Shown here: positions 12,584 to 27,817 of the stretch, piece after piece
Layout of the letters: each line of letters starts with the position of its first letter
How positions within the stretch are numbered: position 1 is the first letter of the stretch
Source of the DNA: Epithemia pelagica
Lineage: Eukaryota; Protista; Bacillariophyta
Direction of reading: 5' to 3'
DNA length: 64,000 nt
NCBI GenBank assembly: GCA_946965045.2
Contig: OX337232.1
Location: forward strand, 2,852,001-2,916,000
Notes under the pieces: model-generated
The model's database searches: none
Told to the model about the DNA's origin: nothing
Seen by the model: the letters and a program-made list of their open reading frames with translations, nothing else
Translations under genes and position numbers: made by a program

Positions 12584-15500
12584 ATGAAGGTTGGAGATTC
12601 GCTCAGCATGAATCTGGTGCTTGTGGCATTGCCATTGGTGATACTGTCAAGCAGTTGGACCACGATTCAGGCCTTTCAACACCAACATCAAGTCTCGGTG
12701 TCACGACCCTCCAACAGTTGGTTGGCCGCCGAAACCTCGTCGTCGTCCCCCGCTCCTGCCACCACGACAGGAGGAGACACGCCGGATCAGTCGTTGTTTG
12801 CTCGTCGGACCATTCAATTGGCCGATGCGGCCTCGCAGGGCAAATCGCGATGGGGACCTTCGGAAAATCGTCGGGCACAAAATTTGGCCCAAAGCATGGT
12901 TTTGACCAACAGTGCGTCTCCCATTGATCCACCCGCGACACCGGTGGAATTGCAAGACACGGCAATGGTGGGGGCGGCCCGACGCTTGCCGAAACAATGG
13001 GCGGCCCTCCGAGCGCAAGTCACTCAATTGCCGACGCAACCCAAGGAAACGGCAGCTGAACCCGTCGTCGACGATGCTGTGGCCTCCTTGCAGGCCGCCT
13101 TGCCCAAACAATGGGCGGCGTTGCGAGATTTGGTGGGTATGGCCCGTCTTCCTCGACAATGGGCCGCCTTGCGTCAAGAAGCCTCGGAACCAACGACGAC
13201 GGCATCCTCACCCGTGGCGCCACCGTCGTCCTCCTCCTCGTTGCCCCGTCAATGGGCAGCCCTTCGTGAAGAAACCAAGAAGACCGAATTGGCCCGTCCC
13301 TTCTTTGGGGATGTGGTCCAAACGACCACCAAGGAAGAAACACCCGCAGAACAAGTCGTTCCTCAAGAAGAAGCAGCAGCAGCACCGGTCGTGGGTACCG
13401 CCCTCAGTGGCCCTAAACTCTTCGAAGCCCGTACCTTGCAAGTGGCCGCAGCGGCGGAAGCAGGCATGTCGCGATGGGGAGCTCCCGAAAACCGACGGGC
13501 TGCCATGATGGCAGCGGCCTTGGCGGGAACTGCCCCGGCAGTTGCGGTGGAACCAACGCCGGCGGCCGCCACCACGGCCCCTCCGGCCGAAACGGTTCCT
13601 CCCAAGGCCGAGGAATCGGCCGCATTGGTGCCGAAACAAAAACCATCCATTGCCGCCCTTACGCGATCGATGGAATCGCGTTGGAGCAATTTGGCACGAA
13701 GTCCGGCCATGCGGGGAACTTCGTTGCCGATTCGAGCTCAACCCCGACCTCAATTGGCGAGCTTCAACAAATCTTCCTTGCTCACCCGAAACAATTACTT
13801 CCGGTCGCAACGTGTTCTTACGGGTGGCAACACGGCCTTGCCGCCATCGACCACACCCAGTGCCACTCGTCCCAACCAGTTTGCTCGACGAGTCCTCACG
13901 GGTGGCAACACAGCCTTGCCTCCGTCGACGACACCCAGTGCCACTCGTCCCAGCCAGTTTGCTCGACGTGTTCTTACGGGTGGCAACACGGCCTTGCCGC
14001 CGTCGACAACGCCCAATGCCAGTCGTCCCAATCAGTTTGTCCGTAATACGAGATTTGCTCGTGCGATTCCAGCCTCGCGACCCACTCTGGCGTCCCCGTC
14101 GGGATCGATTCGCAATGTCATTAGTCGACGACAAATTAGTGTGAACACCGACGAACAAGCCAGACCCGTCATGGCCGCGGCCGTGATTCGGGGACGCAAG
14201 GCCGCTACTCCTCCCAAGGCCCAGGAGCCCTCGGCTCCACCGGCAGCTCCACCCGTTCCCGTTACGAGCACTCCAGCACCGGCCGCACCACAAGTGCAAG
14301 GTCCACCGGGCAGCAGCGTGGCAACCGCCGCACCAGCACCACCCATTACGGAAGCCGAAGTGCGGGCCTTGTTTAATCTCTGGAACGACGCCTTGGCCAC
14401 ATTGGATTCGACCACTGTGGCGGAACGGTATGCAGCCGATCCCATTCTGCTTCCCACCGTGTCCGATGAACCCCGGACCGATTTTGCCAGCATTAAGGAT
14501 TATTTTGACAACTTTTTGAAACTCCAACCACAAGGTGTGATTGTGGAAGGAAAGGTCAAGATTGGACCCAATTGGGCGCAAGATGCGGGTATCTACGAAT
14601 TCACCATGGGTACGACTGGTGCCAAGGTTCGGGCTCGTTACTCCTTTGTCTACGTGTTTGAAGAGGGAGAATGGAAGATTGCCCATCATCACTCGTCCAC
14701 CATGCCCGAAGCTCCCGAAACGGTACCCACCGAAGATGAAGTCAAGGGGTTCTTCACACTGTGGAATGATGCTCTTGCCACGTGTACGTTTTCCATGGAG
14801 GCACTGTCGTGAGAGCTCAACCGTGCAGTATGTCTCACTCCTCTCTTGTGGTCTCTACCTTTTTATCGAAACAGTGGACTCGGATACTGTCGCACAACGT
14901 TATGCACAGAACGCGGTTTTGTTGCCGACAGTTTCCGATGTACCTCGTACAGACTATGCCAGCATCAAGGACTACTTTGACAACTTTTTGCAGCTCAAAC
15001 CAGAAGGTGTGATTCTAGACAGCTTTGTAACGACGGGAAAGAATTTGTGCAAGGATGTCGGTATTTACGAATTTACCTTGGGTGCGACTGGCGAAAAGGT
15101 TCGGGCTCGGTACTCCTTTGTTTACATCAAGGAAGGAATGGATTGGAAGATTTCTCACCATCATTCGTCCGTTATGCCGGAAGCTCAAGCAAGCAGTGCC
15201 ATCTCGGAAGAAGAAGTGCGGGATCTCTTCACGCTGTGGAACGATGCTCTTGCAACATGTACGTAGTCGAAGATGAGTAATTTGCTTTGATTTCCTGTCC
15301 AGATCTCAATTTTTTTGTTCTTACACCCTCTTGTGCATGCAGTGGACAGCGATAAGGTGGCCAGTCGGTACGCCAAGGAATCAGTGCTTCTCGCTACAGT
15401 ATCCGATGTCCCCCGCACGGACTATGCAAGCAAAAAGGCATACTTTGATGACTTTTTGAAGAAGGAACCCCAGGGTGAAATTTTGGAATCCTTTGTAGAA

Positions 15501-15662
15501 ATTGGCGACGGTTGGTGCAAAGATGTTGGCATTTATGAATTCACAATGGGTACCACTGGTGAAAAGGTCAAGGGTCGCTACTCCTTCCTCTATTCGTTTG
15601 AAGACGGAGAATGGAAGATTTTGCATCACCATTCCTCCATCATGCCCGAGAGCATTTTATAA
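12584..15662 (+). CDS. Gene B: plastid-targeted iota-class carbonic anhydrase (LCIP63/COG4875, NTF2/SnoaL-like) with 3 domains and a roughly 580-aa low-complexity N-terminal arm
   Basis: Exons 12584-14783, 14875-15258 and 15343-15662, with GT-AG phase-1 introns after WNDALAT. Three domains each contain LFxLWNDALAT...LLxTVSD.PRTD...YFD.FL...GIYEF...RYSF.Y...WKI.HHHSS.MPE. Leader TIQA|FQ. Confidence 0.88.
13811..14044 (+). repeat. Three 78-bp (26 aa) coding repeats in gene B
   Basis: RVLTGGNTALPPSTTP[SN]A[TS]RP[NS]QF[AV]R repeated three times. Confidence 0.9.
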
Positions 15663-16738: not shown

Positions 16739-17047
16739 CTTTGAAGACCGGCTGATCACATTGCAGACACAAGAGCCTCACAAAAACCAAAACCCACATT
16801 CACTCTGAACTGTTGAATAGTGTGAGTGGCAACGAGAACGACGACAACCACAACAACGTCTTGGAGAGAAACAAGGAAATCATCATTCATTCATCCTCTT
16901 GTTGGAAGGAAAAAAGAAAGGACAGGCAATCGGTAGTGGGAGCATTTCAGAGATTCGCGAAGTAGAGAACAATCTTTCGTCCACAAAAGGAGGAGCCGAA
17001 ATTCCACCATGCTGACACCTACAATGCCTCCCAAAAGGCGACGACGA

Positions 17048-20000
17048 ATGGAGGCACAGTGGATTGTCCTTGTGCTTCTTGTTCATTGGTACGGTAGTTC
17101 CAATGCCTTTCAACCGTCTGTGGGTGTCGTTTGGCACCCCAACAAACCATCCGTGGTGGATCAGGAAGGGGGGTCCCTCACGTGGACCAACCACCACAAC
17201 AACCACAAGTACATTCGACAAAAGACATGTCACGGCGCTAGTGTTGCCCATGGTTCCAAGTCCCAGGAATCCGCTGACATGAACAATGCAAAGACACGAC
17301 CGAAATTCTGGGAGGACACGAGCGCCAAGACGGCCGAAACGGTCTTGGCTCGATTGCCCAAACAATGGGCCGCGGTTCGACAAGAAGAACGACAACGACA
17401 AGCCGAGACGACGACAAAATCAATACCCCGTCAATGGGCGGCGATGCGGGCCTTTGCGTCCCATCCAGAGCCGGAGAAGGACGTTCCGTCGGGTCGAGCA
17501 CAGGATTCCCATTCAGCGACGGGACACGAATTTCCATATGGAGGAGCAGAGCATCTCCCAGCGTATAGGGCAAAGAATCCGTCATTACCGACCGAACGAA
17601 ACGACCAGTATGACGATTTGTGGGTAGATGAAGAAATGACCACGGCCAGTCAGAGTTTGGATGAGCTTTTTATGACAGATAATATGATGTACCCTGTTCC
17701 AGAAGAACCAAAGGCAACTGTTGCCCATGGTACCATTCCAGACAGCGCCGATGCGTCCATTGGGGAGGAAACCAGTTCCAACGCGGCTTTCATGAATGCG
17801 GACAGTTCCAAACCGTCCTGGATCGTAGACGAGGAAGATGGAGTCATTGTGTGGCTCCCCGAAGATGATATGGAAAAAGTCACGGAAAATCGACCCCAAC
17901 ACCATCTTGAAACACCTGCCGATCAGGTCGCTACCAAAGTCCAAGTCGGATGGTCCCCTGGCGGTGCAGCGAACGACCGCCATGACATTGCCGTAGAATC
18001 CACACGTGTCCACAGCCAACGAGATGTGGAACGATCGCCCTTGTCGTTTCAGAAAAAGAAATCGCTCACTGCCACTCCGTCCGTTTCGGGAACCATTCAT
18101 TCATGGCATGACAAAGTTCGCAGTCCTCGAACGATTCGGAAAACCGTTCCTCGTTGGTCTTCCAACATGAAACCTCAAGAAATTTCGGCATTTCCAGAAG
18201 GACATGTCGGTCCGACGGATGAGAATACGTATCCAATTCATACTAAACGCGAATTTGCGGAAGGAAATGTCCGTCCAACTCAGAATACGTATCCGATTCC
18301 TCTGAAAAGCACAATCACGCGCCGACTTTCTCTAATGGACCGTGAAAGCCCCATGGAAGGTCACCCGTCCATTGTTGTGGTTCACGCAGTTGAGCCAGAG
18401 GACACTTCATCATGGCCTGCACCCACCCGAGGATTCCGTTACCGGCAAGTTGCTGTCAGCAGCGAGGATGAGCACCCATTAAAAGTGGGTCCTGATTACC
18501 AAGACCAAGAGAAGAATATCGTGAGTGCCACCAAGCAAGTTACTCCTAGCAACGATGATGAAAGACCGCTTAAAGTGGGTCCAGATTACCAAGACAACCC
18601 CGCCATTGGTGCCAGGCGTCAGATTACTGTAAGCAACGATGATGAAAGACCCTTGAAAGTGGGTCCGGATTACCAGCATTACGAAAATGGCACGAGTGCC
18701 AGGCTGCAAGTTCCGGTACGCAATGATGACGAGAGGCCTCTTCAAGTGGGCCCTGATTACCAAGAACGCGAGACTGTCTCTAAGGCCAGAATGCAAGATG
18801 CTGAGAGCAACAACGATGAACAGCCATTGAAAGTGGGGCCAGATTACCAAGGCAATGACAATGTCACTGGTGCCAGAATGCAGGTTCCGGAAAGCAACAA
18901 CGACGAGCAGCCGTTAAAGGTGGGTCCTGATTACCAAGGCAATGACAACGTCACTGGTGCCAGGGTAAACGTCCCTGTAAGCAACGACGATGAGAGACCC
19001 TTGAAAGTGGGTCCTGATTACAAAGATCACGAAAATATAACTGGTGCCAGAATGCAAGTTCTGGAAAGCAACAGCGATGAACAGCCGTTAAAGGTGGGTC
19101 CTGATTATCAAGATCATGAGAATATCACTGGTACCAAGATGGAAGTTCCGGAAAGCAACAACGACGAGCAGCCGTTAAAGGTGGGTCCTGATTATCAAGA
19201 TCATGAGAATATCACTGGTGCCAAGATGCAAGTTCCGGAAAGCAACAACGATGAACAGCCGTTAAAGGTGGGTCCTGATTATCAAGATCATGAGAATATC
19301 ACTGGTGCCAAGATGCAAGTTCCGGAAAGCAACAACGACGAGCAGCCGTTGAAGGTGGGTCCTGATTACCAAGACGAGGATAATAATTTTCTTCGTGCCA
19401 AGTTGGAAGCTGCTTTGAGCAACGATGATGAGCGCCCTTTGAAAGTGGGTCCTGATTACCAAGACCAGGACAACATCACTGGTGCCAAGTTAGAAGTTCC
19501 TGTAAGCAACGACGATGAGCGCCCTTTGAAAGTGGGTCCTGATTACCAAGACCAGGACAATATCACTGGTGCCAAGTTGGAAGTTCCCGTAAGCAACGAC
19601 GATGAGAGACCCTTGAAAGTGGGTCCTGATTACCAAGACCAGGACAACATCACTGGTGCCAAGTTGGAAGTTCCTGTAAGCAACGACGATGAGAGACCCT
19701 TGAAAGTGGGTCCCGATTACCAAGACGAGGATAATAATTTTCTTCGTGCCAAGTTGGAAGCTGCTTTTAGCAACGACGATGAGCGACCTTTGAAAGTGGG
19801 TCCTGATTACCAAGATGACGAGTATATCAGTGGTTTGAGCTGGAAACTTCCTGTGAGCAACGATGATCAGAAGCCATTAAAGGTGGGTCCTGATTACCAC
19901 GAGGACGATATCAGTTTTGTCCCTGACAGGTTGGAAGTTGCTTCGAGCAACGATGATGAGCGCCCTTTGAAAGTTGGCGCTGATTTTCAAGACCATGACC

Positions 20001-22755
20001 ATGACGACATCAGTGGTGCGACGTGGCAAGTTCCTGAGAGCAACGATGATGAAAGACCCTTGAAAGTGGGTCCTGATTACCACGAGGACGATAAGAATTT
20101 TGTCCGTGCCAGGTTGGAAGCTGCTTCGAGCAACGACGATGAGCGCCCTTTGAAAGTGGGCCCTGACTACCATGACCATGACGACATCGGCGGTGCGACG
20201 TGGCAAGTTCCTGAGAGCAACGATGATCAAAGACCCTTGAAAGTGGGGCCTGTTTACCAAGACGACGATAAGAATTTTGTCTGTGCCAGGTTGGAAGCTG
20301 CTTCGAGCAACGACGATGGGCGCCCTTTGAAAGTTGGTCCTGACTACCAAGACCATGACGACATCGGTGGTGCGAGTTGGCAAGTTTCTGAGAGCAACGA
20401 TGATGAAAGACCCTTGAAAGTGGGACCTGTTCACCTAGACGGCGATAAGAATTTTGTTCGTGCCAGGTTTCAAGCTGCTTGGAGCAACGATGATGAGCGA
20501 CCTTTGAAAGTGGGTCCTGATTACGAAAACGGCCCTGTCGTTGGTACTAGGTTGAAAACGGCATTGAGCAACGACGATGAGCAACCCTTGAAAGTGGGTC
20601 CTGATTACCAACAAGACGATAAGAATCTTTTACGTTCTAAGTTGAAAGCTGCTTTTAGCAATGACGATGAGCATCCGTTGAAAGTAGACCCTGACTACCA
20701 ACAAGACGATAAGAATCTTTTACGTTCCAAGTTGAAAGCGGCTTTGAGCAACGATGATAAGCGTCCTTTGAAAGTGGGTCCTGATTATCAGAACGACCGT
20801 GTCGCGGGAGCCAGGTTGCAAACTCCTCCGAGTAACGATGATGAACGACCGTTGAAAGTAGGCCCTGATTACCAAAATGACCGTGTCACTATGGACAAGA
20901 TTGCGTCTATAAGACACGGATCTTTGCGTTTCAGGGAGAAAACGAGTGGTCGTGTCCGGAACCAAAGGGAAATGGACAGTACAGTTGCGGTATTACAGGC
21001 CGCACCGTCTATCACGGAAGCTCAAGTTCGTTCTCTGTTTGATCATTGGAATGACGCGTTGGCGACCTTGAACTCAACTACGGTGGCAAATTGCTATGCA
21101 GTGGAACCAATCCTACTCCCAACCGTGTCAGATGAGCCTCGAACAGACTTCCAAAGTATCAAGGAATATTTTGACACATTTTTGAAACTGGAACCTCAAG
21201 GCGTCATCATGGATGGCAAAATCAACATTGGACCTGGTTGGGCGCAGGATGCTGGTATCTACGAGTTCACAATGGGTGCAACTGGTACCAAGGTAAAGGC
21301 TCGATACTCTTTCCTTTATGTATACGAAGGCGGGGAATGGAAAATAGCGCATCATCATTCCTCCACAATGCCAGAAAGCTTGGAAAAGACACAAATCACT
21401 TCGGAGGAGTGTAAAGGTCTCTTTGATCTTTGGAACAATGCTCTTGCTACTTGTAAGTTCGATGCTTTCGGATTTTCTCAGTGACGTGAGCTCTTGGCTT
21501 GTCTGGACAGAACAACAGGGTACATCTCACACGTGTGTTCTGCCAACCTTTACACTTTCGCCACAGTGGACTCTGAGAATGTGGCCAAACGCTACGCGAG
21601 CAACGCCGTTCTTCTCCCTTCGGTCTCAGATGTTCCTCGAACGGACCATGCTAGTATCAAAGAGTATTTCGACACGTTCTTGAAACTGAAACCTCAAGGT
21701 GTTATTTTGGAAAGTTTTGCTACCACTGGTAGTGATTGGTGCAAGGATGTCGGTATATATGAATTCACCATGGGAGAAACTGGCGAAAAGATCAAAGCCC
21801 GGTATTCATTTGTCTACGTCAAAGAAATGGGGGAATGGAAAATTACACACCATCACTCATCCCCAATGCCCGAATCTGACACAGTACAAAAGCTATCAGA
21901 ACAAGAAGTGAGAAACCTTTTTAATGTTTGGAATGATGCACTGGCAACTCGTAAGTCTTCTTTTCATGGCCTTGAATCACATGCCTACCAGAGTTGTATC
22001 TTATCAGTTGCTTTCTCTGTGTTTCCTGCATCGGCATGAAATGTTTGTTATCTGGATGATCTACAGTCGAAAGTGATACAGTCGCCAATAGATACGCAAA
22101 AGACTCAGTCCTTCTTCCTACGGTTTCCGATGTACCTCGAACGGACTATGAAAGCAAGAAGGAATACTTTGACGTCTTCTTGAAAAGTAAACCGCAGGGA
22201 GAGATTATCGAGTCATTTGTAGAAACTGGAAATGGATGGTGCAAGGACGTTGGAATTTATGAATTCACAATGGGCACAACGGGCCAAAAAGTCAAAGGAC
22301 GGTATTCCTTTGTCTATACGTTGGAAGATGGGGAATGGAAAATTTTGCACCACCATTCCTCTGTCATGCCCGAGACCATACTAACGCCGTCCATGACGGA
22401 CGAGGAAAAGTCGATTCGTTCCTTGTTTGACGAATGGAATGACGCGTTAGCGACGTTGGATTCCGAGAAGGTAGCCCAGCTGTATGCCTCCGATCCCATC
22501 TTCTTGCCCGCAGGGCCGGAGGAGCCACGAACGGACTTTGCCGGTATTCAGGAGTATTTCGACACCTTTTTGAAATTAAAGCCCCACGCCAAGATTCTCG
22601 AGGGAAAAATCACCTTGGGAGACAATTGGGCCCAAGATGCCGGTGTGTATGAAATGACAATCGCAGCTACGGGGGACACGGTCCAAATTCGTTACTCGTT
22701 TCTCTATGTGTTGGAGGATGGAAAATGGAAGATTGCGCATCATCACAATGAGTAA
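17048..22755 (+). CDS. Gene C: plastid-targeted iota-class carbonic anhydrase with 4 domains (4th degenerate) fused to a very long repetitive N-terminal arm
   Basis: Exons 17048-21452 (ORF open from 17009), 21567-21950 and 22067-22755, with introns at the same WNDALAT position as gene B. Leader SSNA|FQPS. Domains 1-3 end in HHHSS; domain 4 ends in HHHNE-stop. Confidence 0.87.
18458..20890 (+). repeat. 28 coding tandem repeats of about 84-93 bp (28-31 aa), core SNDDERPLKVGPDY
   Basis: Counted 28 PL[KQ]V[GD][PA][DV][YFH] cores in the translated ORF. Confidence 0.93.
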
Positions 22756-24019
22756 CAAATCTCTCTGCTTGAAGTAGGGAACACGACGACGCCTCCACCA
22801 AACGTTTTGTCGTGTCTCAAGATGCCCATATTTTCTGTTACCTCAAGAATGTGAACCGTATTGCGTGTGGTGGATGGACTGACTGGACAACCGTGTGATG
22901 AGGCTGCTAGCGATACGGGAAAATGGCGATGTTCCCTTCTGCATAACATCGCCAAGACCAACCTGTGGACGATTTCTGCATCAAAGCTCGACGGTGAAAT
23001 GATTGGTCGAGATTGATGGCGGATGGCAATATGGAACCATGGGAGATATCAGCGTTATAAGCGCAGAGGACGATTGATGGCGGTGTGGAGTCATGCGAGA
23101 TCTCAGCGGTATAAGCGCAGGGGACGATACTCATGCATGTATGTGTTGGAAAATGGCAATGCGAAGATTTTTGTACCACCAATCTTTGCGGAAAAGGGTT
23201 CTGTTTGGCAGTTGGTGTGAGATTCCGTGTTTTGCAGACACTTCTGCTCTTGTGGATTGCGCTTTTCAAGTCATATCGGTGTCCTTGTATCCCTGCAAAC
23301 GGAATCGATCCGTCCTTCTAGTTGTGGAATAGTACAATAGTAACCATGATAGTGTTAGGATTTCACCGACCCTTGTTCACAGCGAGTGCCACGACACCTA
23401 TATGTATTGTAGCTGCAAACCGACTTGAGAAGCGCGACCAACCAACAGTCCGACCATGTTCTATGGGATGCAATACGAAAGACATTATTGCAATGGGTCG
23501 TTGTCTTGGACCTTGGAACGAATCAAGGTCGTTTCTCCTCTGTCAACGTGTGTTTTTTTTGTCTCATGGTTTCCAAAAAATGAGACCGATTCTTTTGGTG
23601 TGTTTGAAAATTCAAACTGCGAAAGGATTCCCGGCGACGTTGAGTGGTGGTGCGACATCAACAAGTGCTTCCGAAATAGACACAAATTGACGTATGTTTC
23701 GGTCCAAGCCATCAACCACAATCAATAGAAAACGAAGAAGAAAGGAGAGAGAGCGAGGAGATCTCTATCCGTATTCCAAAAGACACACTTGAAAAGAAAA
23801 GAACGACACATACAAGGCCTCCACAAGCACCAAGCGAAAATCGAGAGCCGGATCCATCAGAGAAATCAACTGCCAAGCAAGGGCGAGAGCAACTCTTGAC
23901 ACTGCATCAACACAAGGTTCCCTCAAGCTCCCAACGAACTTCTGCTCCACGAAGCACAGGGTCTTGTGTACCAGAGGCCAGAGTGACCCCCCTTTTGTTT
24001 GTTGTTGTCTCAATGAACC

Positions 24020-27000
24020 ATGCAGTGTGAGACACGACAAGAACAACAACAATGGCAAGATGACGTTGGGACACATACTGCCACTAGCATAACGTGGCGC
24101 AAGTTTCGTCGTCGTCGTCATGGTCGTCCGCAAGGCTGGTGGCTGGTTGTCGTCGTCGTCGTGTTGGCACTCCAGCAACAATGGTCGTCTTTGAATCCCC
24201 CCGGGTTTGTTGTCGTTCACGCGTGGAACAGCAATGTTCAATGGCCCTTTCAACAAGCGATTCAAGCGGCTCAAAAGCATCGATCCTGGTCCTCCTTGGT
24301 GTTTGGGGGGTGGAATGTTGCACCAGAACAGGAATGGAATGCCTTGTGGAATCGGGCCATTGATTTGTATCATCGGGCGACACGAACTTCATCGTCGTCA
24401 ACGTCATCGTCGTCCTGGCGTCCCTCGTCGCCCCATGCCGCAGTCGTGTTGGAAGAATTGACCAAATTAATCACCACCTTGGGCACCTGTCGTCCCAGCA
24501 GCAGCAAAGACGACGACGACACGTCCAACAACCAGAACAACAAATTGACACCCCATTCCATTTCCATGATGCAGGGTGCGTTGGATGCCATTGAAGCACA
24601 AGTGGTACGAGAAGAACAAGATCAACAACAAGCGGCCCTTCTCGAGGCACAACGACGAATACAAACCATGACACCCACCACACGGGATGTCACCACGTCG
24701 GAATCACCACCGTCCTTCTCGCAATGGTCGCCCTTTGGTGGAGGACGACGACGACGACGGTCACGGTCGGACAAGCCCGACGACGACAAGTACGACGAAA
24801 ATGGCAATTCCCTAACGGACTACAAGGAGGATCCCATGGTCGTCTTGGTTCGAGCTGCTCAATGCATTGCTCGGGCCATTCAAGATCCCACTGTGGATCC
24901 GGCCCAAGTTCAACCCTTGGTCCATGCCTATGCCAAGGTCAAGGCACAATTGACCGTTGCCCAAGAAACCAATGACGACAATCATGACGACGACGACAAG
25001 GACAAGACGTTGCCCTATTTTATGCAACCATCGACAACGCCAAATCCCAGGACACGCCACAATAACAACAACAACAACCAGGGCTCCGTTATGGAACAGG
25101 GCAGTCGCAAGTTGGAGCCGGAGGATACCAGCAACCAGGACGAAACGGGACGAACATGGTGGAAACCATGGGAGTCGTTCTCCTCCTCAACCACCACGGC
25201 TCCCTTGTCGACCATGACTCGAGCCTGGTACAACCAAGCCTCGGTACCACAAAATCCATGGCAAACCACACAACCACAACCCTCCGAGACGGTCGATAGC
25301 AGTCCTACTTCAACCACAATGGATTCCATGTCAATTCTCAATCCACAAGGTCCCATGCCACGACGACCAACACGCATTCGTGTCGCGTCCTCCCAACCGC
25401 CACCACAAGAATCCACGACATTGACCCAATCCAACGCCCCCGGGATTTCAACCGCAACCACCGTCGCCACACCCGGGATTGCTGCACAAAAAGAAGAAGA
25501 ACAAGAACCATCCAAGGCTTTTGCGTCACCTCTGCAATCGCCACAACCAGCACAAGTACAACCACCTGCACAAACACAAACAGTAACGACTCCTCCTCCT
25601 CCACCAACGCAGCAAGCACAAGCCCAACCAGAAACGACTCCACCACCACCACAAAAATCACAATCACAACCAGTAACAAGTCCACCACCACAGCAACAAG
25701 AAGCACCAACACAACGTACATCGGGTGAATCACCGCCCAGCCCTCAAGCCACGTCAATGGCCCTTTCACCACCACAGCCACCATCTCCCGTATCGTCGTC
25801 AGTGCCCTCGCGCAGTCGACTCCAACCAGAACCACTCTGGCAAGCTCCTGCCAGTTTGCAACCCAGCATGGATTTGGCACAGCAATTGGAAGAAACACTT
25901 TTGTCAGATACAGGTTCGATGGATCCAGTACAAAGCTTTGTCAATTCCTTGGCTGCACAAGCACCCAAACCAGACTCGGAATCCTCCAGGACAACGACTG
26001 CTTCTACGACTACTCGTGCATCGTCACCGTCGACAACCCCTTATGTCCCTGCTACTGCTTCGTCTTCGTTTTCGTCTTCTGAAGCTGCAACTCAAAAGTC
26101 TCCTCAAGCATCGTCTTTTGCAGAAACGAGCGGTATGCCTGGACCTTTTCCTTCGATTCCAGCTCCAACATCCATGACCAATCCAACATCATCGGCCACG
26201 CCAACCATGGTGGACACGAATGCTACGGCACGCATGGAACAATTTGTCGAATCGTTGAGGGCCATTCGGGAAGGAAAGTCCGTTGCACCCAGTACAGCAA
26301 CAACAACGACGACCAACACTGCCTCAACAATGGCCATACCACAGCCTCTGTCAACACCCTCCGAGGTCGACCCAGCACCAACAACAACCGCCTCGGTCGA
26401 CCAATCCGATGTTGCCAGTCTCATGGAACGTGTCCAACAAACATTGGACGCTGAACAGGCACCACAAGAAGAGGCGATTTCATCCGTCACGGACACGGTA
26501 GAAACGACCCGACAGAATCCGTTCACAACAACGAATAGGGATGGACCAGAACGATTGACGCCTCATCCACCCAATGCTCCACCACCGTTGGAGGACGTGA
26601 CCATGGAGGGTCGTCATCGTCCTCCTCCTTCGTCCCCAGTGGACCGCCACATGCGACGTGTCCAGGAAACGGCCCAGAATCTCAACAGTCGCTTCTCGTC
26701 CATGCTGGAATACAGCGACTTGGTTCCCGGAGAGGATTCCAAGGACATGTTCAATGGTGCAAAGGCTATCGACGACCAAGACTACTACCATGGCATGAAC
26801 GACCAGGACCCCAAGGAACAGTTAAAAGTCCAATTGCAACACCTCGAACGTCAAATGGACAAATACCTCAAAGACGAACAGGCTTGGGAGGAAGTGGAAG
26901 AAGGGTGGGATTCGGCCATGCAATTTTGGGTTACCGAAGCATCACCGGCGGTCCGGGAAGGATTTGCCACGGCCTGGAAACAAATTAGTACGGCGTGGAG

Positions 27001-27817
27001 TATGGTGTACCAAATCTTGGTACAACAAAACAAGGCGTCCTGGGTCCCTCGATGGGCCTTGCCCCCACCATCGTCGTCTAGTAATAACTTGATGGATCAG
27101 TTACGACCGGAACGATGGACCGCGTGGGCCCGTCAATTGTCGTGGGTCGAAACAGGCAATGACAGTGTGGGGCACCAGTCTCCCAATCCAACACCCTCTA
27201 CTGCTGCTGCTGCTTCGTCTTCGTCTCCTCAAGTCATTTCGAAGAAACCAAGAAAGGGCAAGGGCGGCGAAAAGGACTATGACGCCATGGCTACAGCCGA
27301 TCCAGACAAGTATGTCGAACCGGAATGGACCCGTTTGGCGGCGGAATGGACTCGGCTCAATAGCGACACGTCCGAATCGACGAAACCATCCAACAACACA
27401 CCAACCAAACCACCCAACACAATGGTCGTTGCCGCCGCAGAAGCACGACCAGTAGTATCCCCGGATTGGTCGCAACTTGCCCAGGAATGGGCTTCCCGAA
27501 ACCGTGACGAGACGCAAGCACGACAAGGCCAACCCGAGGAAACATTCTCCCGTGATGATGATGGAATGATTGAGAATTCGTCGGAATCCAGCAAGGATAA
27601 CCAAGATAATATCCACGAAGACTCTTGGCAAGATCTTGCCCAAGCATGGAAAAGTAGAAACAGCGAAGATCAACAGCAAGAACAACGGCAATACGAAACA
27701 CCCAAGGTATCTTTGGGTACCAAAGCAAAGCCTGCAACAGCAGACGATACAACCCAAGTGAGCTGGCAGTCCTTGGCCAATGATTGGGCCGAACGAAATC
27801 GTGATTTGCACCCTTGA
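24020..27817 (+). CDS. Gene D: large low-complexity protein with possible plastid leader and four C-terminal WxxLAxxWxxxN motifs
   Basis: 1265-aa ORF. Hydrophobic stretch GWWLVVVVVVLAL then VVVHA|WNS. P/T/S/Q-rich core. WTRLAAEWTRLN, WSQLAQEWASRN, WQDLAQAWKSRN and WQSLANDWAERN near the C-terminus. Confidence 0.7.
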   Translation: MQCETRQEQQQWQDDVGTHTATSITWRKFRRRRHGRPQGWWLVVVVVVLALQQQWSSLNPPGFVVVHAWNSNVQWPFQQAIQAAQKHRSWSSLVFGGWNVAPEQEWNALWNRAIDLYHRATRTSSSSTSSSSWRPSSPHAAVVLEELTKLITTLGTCRPSSSKDDDDTSNNQNNKLTPHSISMMQGALDAIEAQVVREEQDQQQAALLEAQRRIQTMTPTTRDVTTSESPPSFSQWSPFGGGRRRRRSRSDKPDDDKYDENGNSLTDYKEDPMVVLVRAAQCIARAIQDPTVDPAQVQPLVHAYAKVKAQLTVAQETNDDNHDDDDKDKTLPYFMQPSTTPNPRTRHNNNNNNQGSVMEQGSRKLEPEDTSNQDETGRTWWKPWESFSSSTTTAPLSTMTRAWYNQASVPQNPWQTTQPQPSETVDSSPTSTTMDSMSILNPQGPMPRRPTRIRVASSQPPPQESTTLTQSNAPGISTATTVATPGIAAQKEEEQEPSKAFASPLQSPQPAQVQPPAQTQTVTTPPPPPTQQAQAQPETTPPPPQKSQSQPVTSPPPQQQEAPTQRTSGESPPSPQATSMALSPPQPPSPVSSSVPSRSRLQPEPLWQAPASLQPSMDLAQQLEETLLSDTGSMDPVQSFVNSLAAQAPKPDSESSRTTTASTTTRASSPSTTPYVPATASSSFSSSEAATQKSPQASSFAETSGMPGPFPSIPAPTSMTNPTSSATPTMVDTNATARMEQFVESLRAIREGKSVAPSTATTTTTNTASTMAIPQPLSTPSEVDPAPTTTASVDQSDVASLMERVQQTLDAEQAPQEEAISSVTDTVETTRQNPFTTTNRDGPERLTPHPPNAPPPLEDVTMEGRHRPPPSSPVDRHMRRVQETAQNLNSRFSSMLEYSDLVPGEDSKDMFNGAKAIDDQDYYHGMNDQDPKEQLKVQLQHLERQMDKYLKDEQAWEEVEEGWDSAMQFWVTEASPAVREGFATAWKQISTAWSMVYQILVQQNKASWVPRWALPPPSSSSNNLMDQLRPERWTAWARQLSWVETGNDSVGHQSPNPTPSTAAAASSSSPQVISKKPRKGKGGEKDYDAMATADPDKYVEPEWTRLAAEWTRLNSDTSESTKPSNNTPTKPPNTMVVAAAEARPVVSPDWSQLAQEWASRNRDETQARQGQPEETFSRDDDGMIENSSESSKDNQDNIHEDSWQDLAQAWKSRNSEDQQQEQRQYETPKVSLGTKAKPATADDTTQVSWQSLANDWAERNRDLHP

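Follow-up and report, generated by a model that had tools for sequence, protein, structure and literature searches.

A predicted four-domain iota carbonic anhydrase of Epithemia pelagica is preceded by an array of 28 repeats with a selectively constrained PLKVGPDY core

In the diatom Epithemia pelagica, a gene for a predicted iota carbonic anhydrase (iota-CA) encodes, ahead of its enzyme domains, a long arm with 28 tandem acidic repeats built on the core PLKVGPDY. It lies on the + strand at positions 17009/17048-22755 of the window, by which we mean the whole 64,000-nucleotide (nt) stretch analyzed (assembly GCA_946965045.2, contig OX337232.1, positions 2,852,001 to 2,916,000). Its three exons encode, in this order, a leader, two tryptophan (W) motifs, the repeat array and four iota-CA domains. 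The repeat core is under strong, long-standing purifying selection while the spacers drift, and the gene is real, transcribed and spliced. Tentatively, and with slightly less than even confidence, we read the arm as a multivalent tether of the sticker-and-spacer type that would place the enzyme in a pyrenoid-associated assembly.

Structure and expression of the gene

A single uninterrupted open reading frame (ORF) of 1,491 codons (17009-21484) contained the leader, both [KR]QWAA motifs, all repeats and CA domain 1; the fusion of arm and enzyme is therefore independent of any splice prediction. The stop codon at 21484 is an artefact of a phase-1 intron that opens after the residues ALAT at 21453. 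Once two introns were removed, the coding sequence measured 5,517 nt (1,838 codons), had no internal stop and ended at 22755. The start at 17048 corresponds to the Met at codon 14 of the ORF, and in-frame ATGs upstream at 17009 and 17024 are alternative starts. Measured from Met14, the arm covers approximately 1,320 amino acids (aa) up to domain 1, followed by a C-terminal enzyme part of 500 aa. A first-pass annotation of this DNA had described one continuous frame with an arm of about 1300 aa before an iota-CA. The arm length agreed with ours, and a continuous frame did link the leader, W motifs, array and domain 1, whereas two GT..AG introns interrupt the remainder up to 22755. The features of the gene are listed below.

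17009-21452, + strand: exon 1, containing leader, N-terminal disordered region, array, linker, CA domain 1 and the first helix of domain 2 (ORF; donor T/GTAAGT; splice joint 21452/21567 in a run X2 contig)
17048-17110, + strand: predicted signal peptide, from Met14 to SNA, then Phe at +1 (SNA/FQP), an ASAFAP-like motif (read from the translation)
17351-17380, + strand: RLPKQWAAVR, first W motif (translation)
17420-17449, + strand: SIPRQWAAMR, second W motif (translation)
17450-18457, + strand: nonrepetitive low-complexity N-terminal region, isoelectric point (pI) ~6, matched only by a pseudogene copy in the same assembly (searches, composition)
18458-20917, + strand: 28 tandem units of 28-31 aa, each with the core SNDDERPLKVGPDYQD and a variable linker of 12-15 aa (pattern scan, Tandem Repeats Finder)
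20918-21010, + strand: short basic linker from the last repeat to CA domain 1 (translation; low AlphaFold confidence)
21011-21364, + strand: iota-CA domain 1, ending HHHSS (Pfam CaMKII_AD; AlphaFold confidence >95; fold match 3h51)
21395-21862, + strand: iota-CA domain 2, spanning intron 1 and ending HHHSS (Pfam CaMKII_AD, translation)
21453-21566, + strand: intron 1, 114 nt, GT..AG, phase 1, after ALAT (sequence and run X2 contig)
21893-22362, + strand: iota-CA domain 3, spanning intron 2 and ending HHHSS, which groups with domain 3 of the neighboring gene B (Pfam CaMKII_AD, domain tree)
21951-22066, + strand: intron 2, 116 nt, GT..AG, phase 1, after ALAT (sequence and run X2 contig)
22399-22755, + strand: iota-CA domain 4 (domain to 22752), ending HHHNE, and stop codon (Pfam CaMKII_AD, domain tree)

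Public sequencing runs were aligned to positions 16900-22850. Runs X1 and X3 were DNA-like, with contigs of up to 443-509 kb in which the introns were present. Run X2 yielded 39 Mb of contigs, the longest of 19.6 kb. One of these, of 1,816 nt, was composed of 20698-21452, 21567-21950 and 22067-22743; it began within the repeat array, traversed all four CA domains and skipped both predicted introns exactly. Run X2 depth in the bin of intron 2 equaled the value from exonic bases alone, so that intron 2 was uncovered, and depth was present in 30 of 30 bins, with a 5′ contig extending approximately 90 nt upstream of 16900. Because of the intron-less contig and the absence of depth over intron 2, run X2 was taken to be transcript-derived, a status judged from its behavior. 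The proposed fusion is borne out at this level for the end of the array, the part of it that the contig covers, where the last repeats are joined to the four CA domains. Contigs of a further run, X4, showed loose ends and clustered differences over 17159-18539 (13 within 470 nt at 17488-17573 is one instance); they may derive from a paralogous pseudogene or a second haplotype rather than from the gene locus.

Composition of the array and selection on its core

The array contained exactly 28 PLKVGPDY-type cores at a spacing of 28-31 aa (regular-expression scan). Tandem Repeats Finder reported DNA periods of 87, 90, 174 and 177 nt over 18445-20787, with scores of up to 1613 and the best scores for 174/177 nt. 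Linkers of two types (..I[TG]GA..VPE and ..NF[LV]RA[RK]LEAA) alternate in its second half, producing a 59-aa super-repeat. Over its 826 aa, the array had a pI of 4.4 and a net charge of -84, with 22% Asp+Glu, 1.9% His and one Tyr per unit; its linkers were Asp/His-rich in places (e.g., QDHDHDD). The 28 acidic repeats of about 29 aa that had been described earlier were thus recovered. An AlphaFold model of six units, built with an alignment of 23 paralogous six-unit rows, lacked secondary structure at a confidence (predicted local distance difference test, pLDDT) of 44.7, which predicts an intrinsically disordered array.

Pairwise codon differences among the 28 copies of PLKVGPDY were mostly synonymous (1,089 synonymous vs. 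186 nonsynonymous), and all four codons of the invariant first Pro were in use. The ratio of nonsynonymous to synonymous divergence (dN/dS, Nei-Gojobori) was 0.09 for the 16-codon core at a dS of approximately 1, that is, with saturated synonymous sites, compared with 0.5 for linkers of the 13-aa class and approximately 1.2 for those of the 14-aa class. Some duplications were recent: units 9/10 and 12-14 differed by 2-5 nt of 87. The low core ratio, the saturation of synonymous sites and the drift of the linkers argue for an array of short linear motifs and against a young or neutral expansion. The constraint on the core, the drifting linkers and the predicted disorder agree with the putative multivalent binding motif suggested in the first-pass annotation.

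Two further properties of the units were observed. Ten N-x-T sequons (NGT, NVT, NIT) occur between 18618 and 19999, at the same linker position in units 3, 5-10 and 12-14. Each core Tyr stands in an acidic context flanked by Pro and Gly.

The carbonic anhydrase domains

Four domains matched Pfam CaMKII_AD (PF08332), the family used in defining iota-CAs (PMC8119650), and the products of all three exons were positive (E values of 1e-10 to 5e-23). The NCBIfam scan of the CA part returned SgcJ/EcaC (TIGR02246). The best sequence matches in the PDB were 3h51 (E = 2.5e-23) and the iota-CA 7c5x (E = 1.7e-11). When units 27-28, the linker and domain 1 were modeled together with AlphaFold, domain 1 had a pLDDT >95, and its top Foldseek match was again 3h51 (template modeling score 0.80, 46% identity), which serves as a structural stand-in for COG4875 (PMC8132391). 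The domains were 57-76% identical to diatom iota-CA relatives. His-His-Ser-Ser, the conserved C-terminal motif of iota-CA domains (PMC6776030, PMC8132391), was present in three of the four domains (HHHSS in domains 1-3), whereas domain 4 ends in HHHNE and lacks the Ser-Ser. Near-invariant residues were also changed in domain 4 (LPAGPEE for LPTVSDx and YEMTIAATG for YEFTMGATG), and in the domain tree it formed a long branch beside domain 1 of the same gene, as a divergent duplicate of that domain. Judged by their residues, domains 1-3 seem intact, whereas domain 4 has a degenerate look and may be noncatalytic. By sequence, and for domain 1 also by predicted fold, the C-terminal part is a four-domain iota-CA of the COG4875 type with presumed CO2 hydration activity.

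In several respects, the protein resembles LCIP63, the iota-CA of Thalassiosira pseudonana, and its counterparts in other diatoms. They have in common a bipartite plastid leader (here a predicted one), two to four tandem CaMKII_AD domains (here four), HHSS at the domain ends and short introns at the domain borders (PMC6776030). The published architecture of diatom iota-CAs consists of the leader and two to four domains only (PMC6776030), whereas here an arm of approximately 1,320 aa, largely predicted to be disordered, precedes the domains, and domain 4 departs from the HHSS rule.

Relatives of the arm and of the repeat

A survey of proteins of at least 807 aa sharing CA-domain words yielded two pure six-/seven-domain proteins and three arm-bearing proteins. 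The latter were P0004 of Epithemia clementina (a 630-aa disordered arm and three domains), P0002 of the same species (a 530-aa arm of helicase-associated-domain repeats and six domains) and P0006 of a member of the Bacillariaceae (a 560-aa arm with another domain, followed by two CA domains). Together with gene B, described below, they have in common with the repeat-arm protein a long N-terminal non-CA extension before two to six domains. None of these raphid pennate proteins, in contrast, contains the PLKVGPDY repeat, and the arms of gene B and P0004 are disordered with RWG/ENRRA motifs. The premise of the first-pass annotation that iota-CAs consist of a leader and domains therefore matches the published picture (PMC6776030) but not the sequence databases, in which diatom iota-CAs with long and different N-terminal arms occur. 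N-terminal arms on iota-CAs are thus not unique, whereas the PLKVGPDY repeat arm is. An arm on an iota-CA is apparently undescribed in the portions of the LCIP63 papers and of the pyrenoid literature that were searched.

In the collections searched, no relative of the repeat was detected outside E. pelagica. A word-index search of 5.8 billion proteins with residues 470-1295 returned the window's own product alone. A HMMER search of 1.84 billion representatives with residues 1-1200 returned one true relative, P0007, from the same assembly, the remaining matches being unrelated tetratricopeptide (TPR), leucine-rich (LRR) or mucin-like repeat proteins. In a scan of JGI metagenomes with the repeat profile, 49 patterns matched and none was confirmed, and the ESM Atlas contained merely low-scoring repeat look-alikes. 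These searches, of a kind that had been suggested earlier, produced nothing beyond the decayed copy in the same assembly. That copy, P0007 (L001:9682-11189, ctg1353l, ENA ERZ21939226), comprises 1.5 kb that match window positions 17318-18410 at 83% nucleotide identity, followed by approximately five decayed units. It is frameshifted, has neither leader nor CA domains and is squeezed in ahead of a PHD-finger gene; the locus looks like a dispersed pseudogene copy of the arm.

Three apparent similarities were rejected. TPR proteins have in common with the repeat an 'xPDYxEAHxNLG'-like string (IKPDYAEAHNNLG), but their period is 34 aa, and the match is a repeat artefact. The Pfam match to urease beta (PF00699) reached 37 bits as a sum of 28 partial matches to profile positions 17-43, with no single significant stretch, and the corresponding NCBIfam score (59 bits vs. 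a cut-off of 129) was a false positive from summed repeats: urease beta has a 12-aa stretch similar to ERPLKVGPDY, and the scores of 28 copies accumulate. Both artefacts could mislead automatic annotation. Finally, an origin of the unit from a segment of a gene B-type arm (SRRQISVNTD..RPV vs. ARRQITVSNDDERPLKV) was not significant. The hidden Markov model of the unit picked that SRRQISVNTD site in Epithemia P0004 at -2.1 bits, a score equaled in 69 of 1,000 shuffles, and gene B was not reported.

Leader, W motifs and neighboring genes

The hydrophobic N-terminus with SNA/FQP presumably fits the ASAFAP cleavage rule for plastid targeting, as judged by eye, and the product would enter the complex plastid by way of a signal peptide with an Ala/Phe cleavage motif. 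Downstream of the leader are the two LP[KR]QWAA[VM]R motifs. In the six-frame translation of the whole window, [KR]QWAA occurred six times: four times in the gene B arm and twice in the repeat-arm gene. Compared with the Rubisco-binding helix of PYCO1, a pyrenoid linker of Phaeodactylum, the motifs have the Trp and a hydrophobic position in common, together with the Leu-x-x-x-Trp spacing and small residues after the Trp. The helix of PYCO1 that binds the Rubisco large subunit is AAEWGSMNQ (general form [AS]EW[GA]SMN), and variants are said to occur in other proteins (PMC10288592). Neither the KWSPRGGS sticker nor KWSP was found anywhere in the protein, and PLKVGPDY itself corresponds to none of the known stickers.

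Just upstream, gene B (12584-15662, +; exons 12584-14783, 14875-15258 and 15343-15662) encodes a second iota-CA, of 967 aa and three domains. Its phase-1 intron positions, the D1-D2-D3 order of its domains and the motif LP[KR]QWAA[LVM]R are the same as in the repeat-arm gene. The gene B arm contains four LP[KR]QWAALR motifs, RWG..ENRRA motifs and three copies of a 25-aa repeat, RRVLTGGNTALPPSTTP. It was 40% identical to the arm of Epithemia P0004, which looks like the gene B orthologue. In the domain tree, types D1, D2 and D3 were common to gene B, the repeat-arm gene and the Epithemia proteins, and the D3 domains of the two window genes were sisters. Therefore, the repeat-arm gene is most simply seen as a tandem paralogue of gene B that would have gained the fourth domain and the array.

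Another diatom (ENA ERZ25042306, L003:10001-12514) has a gene B-type arm protein, P0015, of 837 aa. Its four copies of LPR[QHN]WA[AED]LRE indicate that the W motif is conserved there, and it adjoins the same DPM1-like glycosyltransferase neighbor (78% identical). No iota-CA domain was found within 10 kb downstream of P0015, and a counterpart of the repeat-arm gene was not present at that locus. A gene B-type arm can therefore stand alone, and this speaks for such arms being functional modules.

Two more neighbors, gene A (4951-10599, +) and gene D (24020-27817, +), contain 16 and 4 copies, respectively, of an LAxxWxxxN helix close to the large-subunit motif of PYCO1. With gene B and the repeat-arm gene, this makes four neighboring genes with Trp helices, a circumstantial pointer to the pyrenoid.

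Discussion

How could a constrained, 28-unit arm serve a carbonic anhydrase? Under the tether reading, the two LP[KR]QWAA[VM]R helices would dock the protein at the Rubisco or pyrenoid matrix, and many copies of one partner would attach to the 28 PLKVGPDY stickers. This partner might be Rubisco, a basic linker, the pyrenoid shell or the CA hub itself. The CA hub, in oligomerizing, would add further valency. Because iota-CA modules oligomerize (iota-CA forms high-mass oligomers; PMC6776030), the enzyme would thereby form a dense layer or network, fixed in the place where HCO3- and CO2 must be interconverted. We infer the pyrenoid location, the binding and the scaffold function alike.

The general design has precedents. 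Like the Rubisco scaffolds PYCO1, EPYC1 and CsoS2, the arm combines tandem repeats, here predicted to be disordered, with a short invariant sticker containing an aromatic residue and with variable spacers, so that the 28-unit array has the hallmarks of linker-type repeats; its 59-aa super-repeat compares with the ~60-aa spacing expected of Rubisco linkers (10.1101/2023.10.26.564148). Unlike those proteins, it contains neither a KWSPRGGS nor a GTGYNP sticker, is strongly acidic and is fused to an enzyme. Sequence homology of the array to Rubisco linkers was not found in the word-index and HMMER searches.

Several observations weigh against the tether reading. To our knowledge, the known Rubisco linkers are basic, whereas the array is acidic (pI 4.4, net charge -84). 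The W motifs have Arg where PYCO1 has Asn584, the residue that forms a hydrogen bond with Rubisco Tyr89 (PMC10288592), and the iota-CA of T. pseudonana was localized to the stromal periphery rather than to the pyrenoid (PMC6776030). The repeat was not found in other species, and any function would be lineage-specific. No sequencing run was labeled RNA, run X2 being considered RNA solely by its behavior, and the short-read contigs of every run broke within the array, so that none spans the gene from leader to stop or all 28 units. Finally, AlphaFold did not dock units 27-28 on domain 1; with an arm pLDDT of 44-58 and only three alignment rows there, this outcome is uninformative rather than negative.

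A stronger form of the tether reading can be drawn by analogy with CcmM of beta-carboxysomes. In CcmM, a gamma-CA domain is fused to repeated Rubisco-binding SSUL modules. The repeat-arm protein would be comparable in design, with an oligomerizing CA joined covalently to multivalent repeats, but it differs in CA class (gamma vs. iota), in having short motifs predicted to be disordered instead of folded SSUL modules, and in the reversed order of its parts. Neither the hexapeptide/gamma-CA family nor RuBisCO_small was found in Pfam or NCBIfam scans of the protein, which is thus no CcmM by family membership. That PLKVGPDY is a new pyrenoid sticker, and the protein a convergent eukaryotic counterpart of CcmM with an oligomeric CA hub and a 28-valent linker for Rubisco, a basic linker or the pyrenoid shell, is speculative and probably incorrect. 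If true, such a counterpart would help to build or coat the CO2-fixing condensate, and genes A, B and D, clustered with it, would encode further scaffold proteins of the W-helix kind.

Other explanations of the arm need no sticker. We consider it unlikely that the arm is an acidic polyelectrolyte that acts by bulk charge and without a specific partner, whether as an entropic spacer or bristle keeping the CA hub soluble or distant, or as a low-affinity, high-capacity binder of Ca2+, Mn2+ or protons near the enzyme. Its charge and Asp+Glu content, its QDHDHDD-like linkers and its predicted disorder would all suit such a role, but charge alone would not keep PLKVGPDY invariant while the acidic linkers drift. 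The first-pass annotation had also proposed an acidic, D/E/H-rich metal-binding or spacer arm. The acidity holds, whereas the array is not especially rich in His, the iota-CA of Phaeodactylum tricornutum is reported to be metal-free (as cited in PMC13579330), and neither an EF-hand nor another metal-binding family was detected in the Pfam and NCBIfam scans.

It is quite improbable that the array is a functionless coding minisatellite, confined to this lineage, whose expansion a duplicated iota-CA gene has tolerated. The lack of relatives in other species, the very recent duplications of units 9/10 and 12-14, the partial copy decayed to a pseudogene elsewhere in the assembly and the degenerate look of domain 4 are what this explanation would lead one to expect. 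On the other side, the frame is open over 4.4 kb, the locus is transcribed and spliced, and a core dN/dS of 0.09 with saturated synonymous sites indicates long-term selection on the peptide; the decayed copy itself exemplifies the fate of unselected copies.

Less probable again is a pro-region or polyprotein, in which the arm would be cleaved off, or cut to peptides, during or after import, so that the working enzyme would be a standard iota-CA of four domains; in that case, the conserved core would serve as a signal for processing or chaperoning. Each unit does have a conserved short site, with an Arg-Pro-Leu (RXL-like) triplet in 18 of the 28, and run X2 depth over the CA part exceeded that over the 5′ part, although such depth cannot rank parts of a gene. 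However, the RXL-like Arg is replaced in 10 of the 28 units while the next eight residues are invariant, and neither a protease-site family nor a precedent among plastid iota-CAs was found in the literature searched.

It is hardly credible that the repeats and CA domains are separate genes or the array an assembly error: short-read contigs do fragment within the array without spanning it and no run is labeled RNA, but a single ORF runs from the leader via the array into domain 1, the spliced run X2 contig begins inside the array, independent runs contain 64-85% of sampled 31-mers at ≥99% identity, and ENA assembly ERZ21939226 places the window within a contig of 1.49 Mb.

In abundance and in expression level, iota-CAs rank among the foremost carbonic anhydrases of oceanic diatoms (PMC8119650), although their site of action and their positioning are poorly understood. 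Knowledge of diatom pyrenoid scaffolds is sparse; PYCO1 lacks wide conservation, and centric diatoms have no known linker (10.1101/2023.10.26.564148). Should the arm prove to be no more than an acidic spacer of one lineage, the gene would be a curiosity of a single diatom. As a tether, the selected 28-valent arm, with its paralogue and its neighbors bearing Rubisco-helix-like motifs, would offer a concrete handle on how a carbonic anhydrase might be tethered in a red-type pyrenoid, and its 16-aa core a compact peptide with which to fish for partners.

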